NCBI GenBank assembly: GCA_002269645.1
Contig: NIVC01001905.1
Coordinates: 113,691 to 177,690 of the forward strand
Length of the DNA: 64,000 nucleotides
Source: Macrostomum lignano
Taxonomy: Eukaryota
Reading direction: 5' to 3'
The notes beneath the pieces are model-generated. The model saw only the letters and a program-made list of their open reading frames with translations. It was not told the origin of the DNA and did no database searches. A program made the translations under genes and the position numbers. This document shows positions 22,106-23,175 of this stretch, in pieces (position 1 is the first letter of the stretch; each line of letters begins with the position of its first letter).

Positions 22106-23175
22106 TCAGCCAGGGCCGAGGTAGTCAGTAGAGCAGGTGACGTAGCGGCACAGCTCGTAGTTCTGCACAGCCTGGTCAACCAGCGGCTTGAAGGCCCTCA
22201 GCTCCGGGTAGTAGGCAGAGTACACCACAAGGTCACGGAGAAAGTCCACGAAGTTCACTGTAGTTGACAGATTTCATGAGTTCATGAGGCTTGGTTTGCT
22301 ATCTGTCTGTCTGTCTGTCTGTCTGTCTGTCTGTCTGTCTGTCTGTCTGTCTGTCTGTCTGTCTGTCTGTCTGTCTGTCTGTCTGTCTGTCTGTCTGTCT
22401 GTCTGTCTGTCTGTCTGTCTGTCTGTCTGTCTGTCTGTCTGTCTGTCTGTCTGTCTGTCTGTCTGTCTGCCTGTCTGTCTGTCTGTCTGTCTGTCTGTCT
22501 GTCTGTCTGTCTGTCTGTCTGTCTGTCTGTCTGTCTGTCTGTCTGTCTATCTATCTATCTATCTATCTATCTATCTATCTATCTATCTATCTATCTATCT
22601 ATCTATCTATCTATCTATCTATCTATCTATCTATCTATCTATCTATCTATCTATCTATCTATCTATCTATCTATCTATCTATCTATCTATCTATCTATCT
22701 ATCTATCTATCTATCTATCTATCTATCTATCTATCTATCTATCTATCTATCTATCTATCTATCTATCTATCTATCTATCTATCTATCTATCTATCTATCT
22801 ATCTATCTATCTATCTATCTATCTATCTATCTATCTATCTATCTATCTATCTATCTATCTATCGAGCTCACTATGCGAGTAGTGGCGCCTCCAGTAGGCC
22901 TTGAACACGAGAATGTCGCCCCTCTCGCAGCGCTGGTTGCAGTTCATCGGGTTGGCGCGCTTCTCCGGCCGCGGCTGACCCCTGGCACCGAGCCTGCTGT
23001 CCAGCTGGCGAACAAAGTCAGCTGCCTGCATCTCGTTAATCGTCTCCTCGGCCTGAGGCGTCGTGGCCGCCGCGGACACGGCAGAGAGACAGCAGACGAC
23101 TAGCAGAGCCAGCAGGGGCAGTCGGCCTCCAGCTGCACCGTGGCACGGAGGCCGACGAAGTTGACCTCGAGTCAT
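22106..23175 (-). CDS. Orphan secreted prepropeptide-like protein; complement join(22872..23175,22106..22257), 151 aa
   Basis: ATG in caaaaATG context. Hydrophobic signal stretch [19 protein letters not shown]. Phase-1 donor A|GTGAGC and acceptor ctacag|TG join to an open frame ending LGPG*. GC3-rich codons. KR site followed by a 4-Cys domain. Confidence 0.75.
22301..22863. repeat. Compound microsatellite (TGTC)n(TATC)n filling the intron of the secreted-protein gene
   Basis: Seen directly. Confidence 0.97.

Follow-up and report, generated by a model that had tools for sequence, protein, structure and literature searches.

A two-exon Macrostomum lignano gene with a microsatellite intron encodes a prohormone-like secreted mini-protein and has a paralogue group in the same species

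Introduction

The precursor of a type I crustacean hyperglycaemic hormone (CHH) consists of a signal peptide, a variable precursor-related peptide, a Lys-Arg (KR) pair, and a helical, disulfide-stabilised hormone of approximately 72-78 residues with a Gly-based amidation signal at its C-terminus. To our knowledge, CHH and ion transport peptide (ITP) form an ecdysozoan family. The vertebrate proteins NPGL and NPGM (FAM237A/B) are secreted, disulfide-bonded proteins of approximately 80 residues that are C-terminally amidated by way of a Gly signal. Saposin-like proteins (SAPLIP) are small helical bundles whose terminal helices are stapled by paired disulfides, with six Cys arranged in a fixed pattern, and the ALKAL/augmentor (FAM150) proteins are receptor ligands with secreted helical domains in which four Cys form two disulfides.

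Flatworm peptide-hormone catalogues have mostly been assembled from short amidated peptides and multiple dibasic sites, and large single-copy mini-protein hormones are therefore easily missed. The flatworm M. lignano serves as a model amenable to transgenesis and RNAi, and its pc2 phenotype is known. Here we describe Mlig020079, a gene of this species that is deposited as a "hypothetical protein" and has never been characterised; its gene ids and peptide motifs, like those of its paralogue Mlig014117, are not mentioned in the searchable literature or in the searchable supplements of M. lignano papers. Together they make up a small, taxon-restricted family that is new and whose general kind, the prohormone-like secreted mini-protein, is known. 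The NPGL and NPGM proteins demonstrate that amidated "mini-protein" hormones of the size of the Mlig020079 product exist, and the layout of its precursor resembles that of type I CHH, as set out in the comparison that closes this paper.

Results

A gene split by a microsatellite

Mlig020079 is a genuine two-exon M. lignano gene on the minus strand of the window, i.e., of the whole 64,000-nt stretch of DNA that was analysed, and its exons splice into a 456-nt coding sequence (CDS) for a product of 151 aa (Table 1). A previous sequence-only reading of this DNA had proposed exactly this product by splicing across a (GATA)n(GACA)n intron, and our analysis reproduced that product exactly. In GenBank, the M. 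lignano hypothetical protein BOX15_Mlig020079g2/g3 (PAA62743 and PAA92458) matches the product at 100% identity, and Mlig020079g1 matches it at 99%, with R56H as the sole difference. The Mlig_3_7 annotation combines RNA-seq (StringTie/TACO) with a de novo transcriptome and takes its ORFs from TransDecoder (PMC5730564); the annotated model therefore reflects a spliced transcript. The start ATG, at 23175, is the first ATG past an in-frame stop located 15 codons upstream. In the program-made ORF list the gene appears as separate halves, 22855..23175 (106 aa) and 22106..22258 (50 aa), which are never joined, just as the earlier reading had warned in stating that the ORF track hides half of the gene. 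Two ORFs of 206 aa and 270 aa that span the intron on the plus strand were rejected as microsatellite repeat artefacts.

Table 1. Features of the Mlig020079 locus, listed in the direction of transcription (window coordinates).
Feature	Position	Strand	Description	Basis
Possible TATA box	23230..23236	-	TATATAT; ends 55 nt upstream of the ATG	sequence
Candidate trans-splice site	23197-23202	-	acceptor-like TTGCAG, 26 nt upstream of the ATG	sequence
Coding exon 1	22872..23175	-	304 nt, ends in phase 1, boundary ..CAT A/GTGAGC; encodes the signal peptide and pro-region, the KR site and the 28 residues with which the mature domain begins	identical match to PAA62743/PAA92458
Predicted signal peptide	23068..23175	-	approximately residues 1-36	hydrophobicity and -3/-1 rule
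Pro-region	22963..23067	-	residues 37-71; poorly conserved between paralogues; pLDDT mostly <55	
Putative proprotein-convertase site	22957..22962	-	Lys72-Arg73 (AAG CGC)	sequence, paralogue alignment, fold boundary
Mature domain, exon-1 part	22872..22956	-	residues 74-101; Cys79-x3-Cys83 and the non-conserved Arg96-Arg97	
Intron	22258..22871	-	614 nt, phase 1, GT..AG; almost entirely (GATA)~80(GACA)~60 microsatellite	
Coding exon 2	22106..22257	-	152 nt including the TGA stop (22108..22106); acceptor ..CTACAG/TGAAC..; encodes the last 50 mature-domain residues, among them Cys138, Cys143 and Gly151 (codon 22109..22111)	
Possible polyadenylation signal	21806..21811	-	AATAAA, ~295 nt past the stop codon	sequence

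A second copy of the locus, here called L001 (21 kb of contig NIVC01001145.1, assembly GCA_002269645.1), aligns colinearly with the window at 87-98% identity. The CDSs of the two copies differ at only 1 of 456 bases, with exon 2 identical at 152 of 152, whereas the flanks, taken as 600 nt to either side, show 24 differences in 1198 aligned bases (~2%) and additional indels. At the flank rate, approximately nine differences would be expected in the CDS where one is observed (Poisson P(<=1) ~0.001), making the CDS approximately ten-fold better conserved than its surroundings. The intron itself measures 793 nt in L001 (10305-11097) against 614 nt in the window, with 106 rather than 60 GACA units; despite this change in length, the splice sites are kept and the exons are essentially the same in both copies. 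The GC3 of the CDS is 0.76, compared to a GC content of approximately 0.44 for the window. The arrangement amounts to more than chance, because an identical annotated protein exists, the CDS exceeds its flanks in conservation, and the paralogue described below shares the intron position and, except for the internal Arg-Arg (RR) pair, the features listed for this precursor. The product of Mlig020079 is, with high confidence, a real secreted protein.

Tandem repeats scoring at least 100 occupy approximately 38% of the window (1-64000). They form dozens of different minisatellite and microsatellite arrays, in which the period ranges over 4-89 bp and the array length from approximately 60 bp to 2.7 kb, and many of them yield long spurious ORFs. 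Exon-sized neighbouring ORFs are located at 44794-45918 (-), 55799-56464 (+), 58332-59183 (+) and ~7000-9350 (+), and the domain matches retrieved with the neighbouring ORFs were to a Na/Ca exchanger (E 4e-29), OCIA (E 5e-12) and a galactosyltransferase (E 2e-14). The annotation of L001 includes a T-box gene on the side equivalent to ~7-9 kb of the window.

Relatives within M. lignano and the reach of the databases

We searched residues 38-151 by exhaustive phmmer against 1.84 billion representative proteins, a database of such size that a 78-residue domain passes only above approximately 45 bits. Three matches were retrieved, namely the gene itself, a mis-fused UniRef model and the M. lignano protein Mlig014117g3 (150 aa, 52% identity, E 1.5e-22), and among these 1.84 billion representatives there was no relative outside M. 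lignano. Mlig014117g3 together with Mlig014117g1/g2 makes up a second paralogue group, such that the family consists of two paralogue groups in M. lignano with three loci each, already present in GenBank as hypothetical proteins. The description of the gene as an orphan in the sequence-only reading consequently stands in one part, no relative having been found outside M. lignano, and falls in the other, given the Mlig014117 group and the GenBank entries for both.

No relatives beyond M. lignano came out of word-indexed searches, whether the query was the window protein, the two-sequence alignment or the paralogue, and the alignment query matched nothing; these searches are insensitive, as shown by the fact that they missed the paralogue recovered by phmmer. 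A scan of JGI metagenomes gave 114 pattern matches, 0 of which were confirmed, and no further copies of the gene are present within the window, L001 or the paralogue locus L002. The restriction to one species holds as far as the databases reach, with other Macrostomum genomes and transcriptomes evidently lying outside the protein collection.

The UniRef model among the phmmer matches (A0A1I8IW.., 223 aa, "BCDHK_Adom3 domain-containing protein") is an ab initio mis-fusion. It skips residues 64-101 and joins unrelated upstream sequence and an out-of-frame 5' reading of Mlig020079 with portions of the true protein. As evidence for the family it is not independent.

The locus of Mlig014117g3, L002, is located on contig NIVC01000903.1, and its first intron lies at the homologous position and in the same phase (..AAT A/GTGAGT ... 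TTCAAG/TGAAC..). Over 77 aligned codons of the mature domain, Mlig020079 and Mlig014117 are separated by a dN of 0.35 and a dS of ~1.1, for a dN/dS of ~0.31, values that point to an old duplication under purifying selection. An acceptor-like TGCAG motif near the ATG is common to both paralogues, 26 nt upstream in the window and 6 nt upstream in L002 (just upstream of 10001), and could be a spliced-leader trans-splice site; the trans-spliced share of M. lignano genes is 38.8% (PMC5730564).

Two further observations concern L002. The last coding exon of Mlig014117g3 (L002 12053-13172) contains a 1104-bp element at L002 12061-13164, between ..DYE and ICRY.., with perfect 12-bp terminal inverted repeats (CAGTGTTGGGCA) and an 8-bp target-site duplication (GATTTGCC). 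By virtue of these repeats and this duplication, the element looks like a hAT-type MITE. The GenBank model of Mlig014117g3 treats it as an intron, and this copy of the gene may be disrupted by the insertion. Upstream of Mlig014117g3, a gene with a 153-aa product is called at L002 4089-4630; its uninterrupted translation has a signal-peptide-like start, MRPLLLCFLYLSALMAGCSEA, followed by stops and a repeat (..SASDT..), and the gene is probably spliced or mis-modelled.

Layout of the precursor and its predicted fold

The N-terminus of the Mlig020079 product has a basic n-region of 18 residues, a hydrophobic core of 12 residues and the c-region SAVSA/A. Hydrophobicity reaches its maximum of 3.04 at residues 21-31, and sites that obey the -3/-1 rule, applied as a heuristic, fall at residues 35-37. 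This layout is common to the Mlig014117 paralogue. The n-region is unusually long, and residues 19-37 could instead serve as a signal anchor; in the full-length structural model the signal-peptide region has a pLDDT below 40.

The C-terminal 78-aa part of the precursor contains C79-x3-C83, C138-x4-C143, RR at 96-97 and Gly at 151. All four Cys are invariant across both paralogues, as are the stretches VFKAYW, MNF, LRDLVV and CRY.TC.TDYL. A Lys-Arg pair precedes the invariant MNCxxRCE motif by 3-4 residues in each paralogue. Neither pair has Arg at P4, so they do not fit the furin R-x-K/R-R consensus and, to judge by their sequence, fit a dibasic rule of the PC1/3 or PC2 type instead. The pro-region could not be meaningfully aligned between the paralogues, whereas the domain after KR is 57% identical. 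The terminal Gly is kept in both, although the residues before it differ and an indel is adjacent (LGPG vs L-MG), in a comparison that comprises two sequences only. Both mature domains are weakly basic, with net charges of +0.9 and +2.0 and pI values of 7.9 and 8.4.

These comparisons agree with the sequence-only reading with regard to the signal peptide, for which both hydrophobicity and the -3/-1 rule speak and which has its counterpart in the paralogue; the KR site, which in the paralogue also borders a conserved, folded domain; and the terminal Gly, which the paralogue also carries. They do not support it on two other points. It had suggested possible processing into two chains through the internal RR, which is not conserved, being replaced by Ala-Ile in the paralogue, and lies within predicted helix 2. 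It had also drawn an analogy to the Pro-amide of calcitonin-type peptides, and the paralogue would end in Met-amide. On the alignment and the structural model, the RR does not appear to be a processing site, and the product would for that reason be one chain.

We generated a predicted structure of the mature domain with AlphaFold2 from the two-sequence alignment. The model has a mean pLDDT of 84 and a pTM of 0.71, with the last four residues disordered, and contains helices at residues 6-10 (with Cx3C), 14-25 (with RR), 31-44 and 46-74 (with Cx4C) in mature numbering. In the full-length model, residues 1-77 are of low confidence and residues 79-147 score 83-86, with the confident domain beginning at approximately residue 79, which places the edge of the fold at the KR site. 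The full-length model also has a predicted helix in the pro-region, at residues 48-62. The first helix carries Cx3C, and Cx4C lies where the last helix ends; this placement implies two disulfides that would run from one motif to the other and staple the termini of the bundle.

In keeping with the earlier remark that the Cys spacing fits no recognised family, none of our searches placed the protein in a known one. Pfam at E<=10 assigned no family to the full protein, the mature domain or the paralogue, and a search of PDB sequences with the single sequence gave no match. A two-sequence profile retrieved Sec7/cytohesin from the PDB (E ~0.05, 17 bits), which we took as a chance match; Sec7 is a cytosolic helical domain. 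Foldseek comparison of the confident helical model to the PDB produced four matches, all with E>6 (best 6.8) and none meaningful, and comparison to BFVD produced a best E of 4.0, likewise with no meaningful match. The exhaustive phmmer search described above was also free of significant matches to any known family.

Discussion

We tentatively read Mlig020079 as the precursor of a convertase-processed, probably amidated, 77-residue single-chain helical secreted signalling ligand with two disulfides and no known family, a reading to which, taken as a whole, we give not quite an even chance. Under this reading, the signal peptide (approximately residues 1-36) would direct the precursor into the ER and be removed near Ala35-Ala37. 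The C-terminal domain would fold into the predicted compact bundle of four helices, with disulfides probably pairing Cx3C with Cx4C. A PC2-type convertase would then cleave after Lys72-Arg73 and so remove the pro-region, and PHM/PAL would turn Gly151, conserved in the paralogue, into a C-terminal amide. The product, of 77 residues (Ala74-Pro150) and approximately 9.2 kDa, would end in Pro-NH2 (in the paralogue, Met-NH2) and be released as an extracellular signalling ligand; its mass follows from the 9292 Da of the 78-mer by subtraction of ~58 Da for amide formation and 4 Da for the disulfides.

The machinery for such processing is present in M. lignano and its relatives. Nervous-system expression and a lethal RNAi phenotype are both known for an M. 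lignano pc2 homologue (PMC4490696), and in planarians prohormones need pc2 to be processed and many peptides are amidated (PMC2953531). As statistical support for processing, a single KR and a terminal Gly in two paralogues are weak. Considering the parts of the reading separately, we regard cleavage at KR as likely, amidation as nearly as probable as its absence, and a hormone-like signalling role as possible but somewhat less so than amidation.

A serious rival to the signalling ligand is a secreted gland product, whether a seminal-fluid or prostate protein, an adhesive, cement or rhabdite component, or a helical antimicrobial or defence protein, for which KR would mark ordinary removal of a pro-peptide. 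A signal peptide, a pro-region and a compact disulfide domain fit such a product too, and antimicrobial peptides also undergo pro-peptide cleavage and C-terminal amidation. The family has been seen only in M. lignano, as far as the databases reach, and restriction to one species is typical of fast-evolving reproductive and gland proteins in Macrostomum (PMC7336406). Reproduction-related genes of Macrostomum are described as evolving rapidly, and many putative seminal-fluid proteins as small and secreted, with a signal peptide (PMC7336406, PMC5977470). However, a dN/dS of approximately 0.3 with saturated dS indicates long-term purifying selection, unlike the rapid adaptive change of seminal-fluid proteins, and the weakly basic mature domains are unlike most cationic antimicrobial peptides. 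In addition, KR lacks the furin P4 Arg that is expected in pro-proteins of the constitutive pathway, and Foldseek matched neither a saposin-like fold nor that of any other pore-former. With its low dN/dS, near-neutral charge and non-furin site, the protein is somewhat at odds with a gland product, which we consider unlikely while taking it seriously.

A less probable explanation is that the protein is secreted, or resides in the secretory pathway, and is neither cleaved at KR nor amidated, with KR and Gly incidental, approximately 115 residues functional, and a type II membrane anchor possible. Single dibasic sites and terminal Gly residues are both common by chance, the hydrophobic residues 19-37 are long enough for a possible anchor, and the pro-region contains the predicted helix. 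On the other hand, one would then have to account for a pro-region that is essentially unconserved next to 57% identity after KR, for the conservation of both KR and the terminal Gly, and for the position of KR at the fold boundary, and we consider an unprocessed product quite improbable.

Finally, the notion that Mlig020079 is not a functional gene, being either a chance pair of ORFs around a microsatellite or a pseudogene, might appeal to an intron of pure simple repeat in a window that is 38% tandem repeat and to the transposon within the last exon of one paralogue copy, but it is effectively refuted by the exact agreement of the transcript-derived annotation with the model, the ten-fold better conservation of the CDS over its flanks, the dN/dS of approximately 0.3 and the conserved intron position with respect to the paralogue, the confident fold prediction, and the elevated GC3 relative to the GC content of the window.

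Returning to the processed signalling ligand, its boldest form would make Mlig020079 and Mlig014117 an unrecognised, macrostomid-restricted neurohormone family of amidated proteins of approximately 77 residues, with two disulfides and a helical fold not in the PDB, acting through a receptor as a convergent flatworm counterpart of arthropod CHH/ITP-type hormones. We hold this form to be unlikely as it stands. Should the product be neurosecretory, endocrine signalling specific to this lineage could readily be approached through the family, which might also add a small disulfide-stapled helical fold not seen before; as a product of glands or seminal fluid, it would join the taxon-restricted secreted proteins and hold modest interest. 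Either way, the locus illustrates that real genes with pure microsatellite introns are broken up in a program-made ORF track.

Comparison with Described Families

Several described families were considered and set aside. Insulin and relaxin have a six-Cys framework of B and A chains, with a C-peptide bordered by dibasic sites between them, in contrast to the four Cys found here, the sole internal dibasic pair (RR96-97) is unconserved and lies in a helix, and there was no Pfam match. Eclosion hormone is a protein of approximately 62 residues with six Cys, compared to 78 residues and four Cys in Mlig020079, and again Pfam gave no match.

The ALKAL/augmentor proteins differ from Mlig020079 in the spacing of their Cys and in having no amidation signal, and membership is further opposed by the lack of any match to Pfam FAM150, to PDB sequences or to a PDB fold. 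The likeness to saposin-like proteins lies in the stapling of the terminal helices, which the placement of Cx3C and Cx4C implies for Mlig020079. With four Cys, no Pfam SapB match and no saposin-like structure among the Foldseek PDB matches, we rejected membership in this family as well.

The likeness to NPGL and NPGM is one of size and of the amidated "mini-protein" type. These proteins differ in that they have a single disulfide, lack a pro-region ahead of the mature part and carry Gly-Arg-Arg where Mlig020079 has a bare terminal Gly, and neither the Pfam nor the phmmer searches revealed sequence similarity to them.

The comparison with CHH/ITP/MIH (PF01147) sets four Cys (Cx3C ... Cx4C) against the six-Cys framework of CHH with its three disulfides, and membership was rejected on this count as well as on the lack of a PF01147 match for either paralogue (Pfam, E<=10) and of any phmmer match outside M. 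lignano. Nevertheless, the Mlig020079 product falls in the same size class as a type I CHH precursor and has its parts in the same order, a resemblance that is one of build and not of membership.
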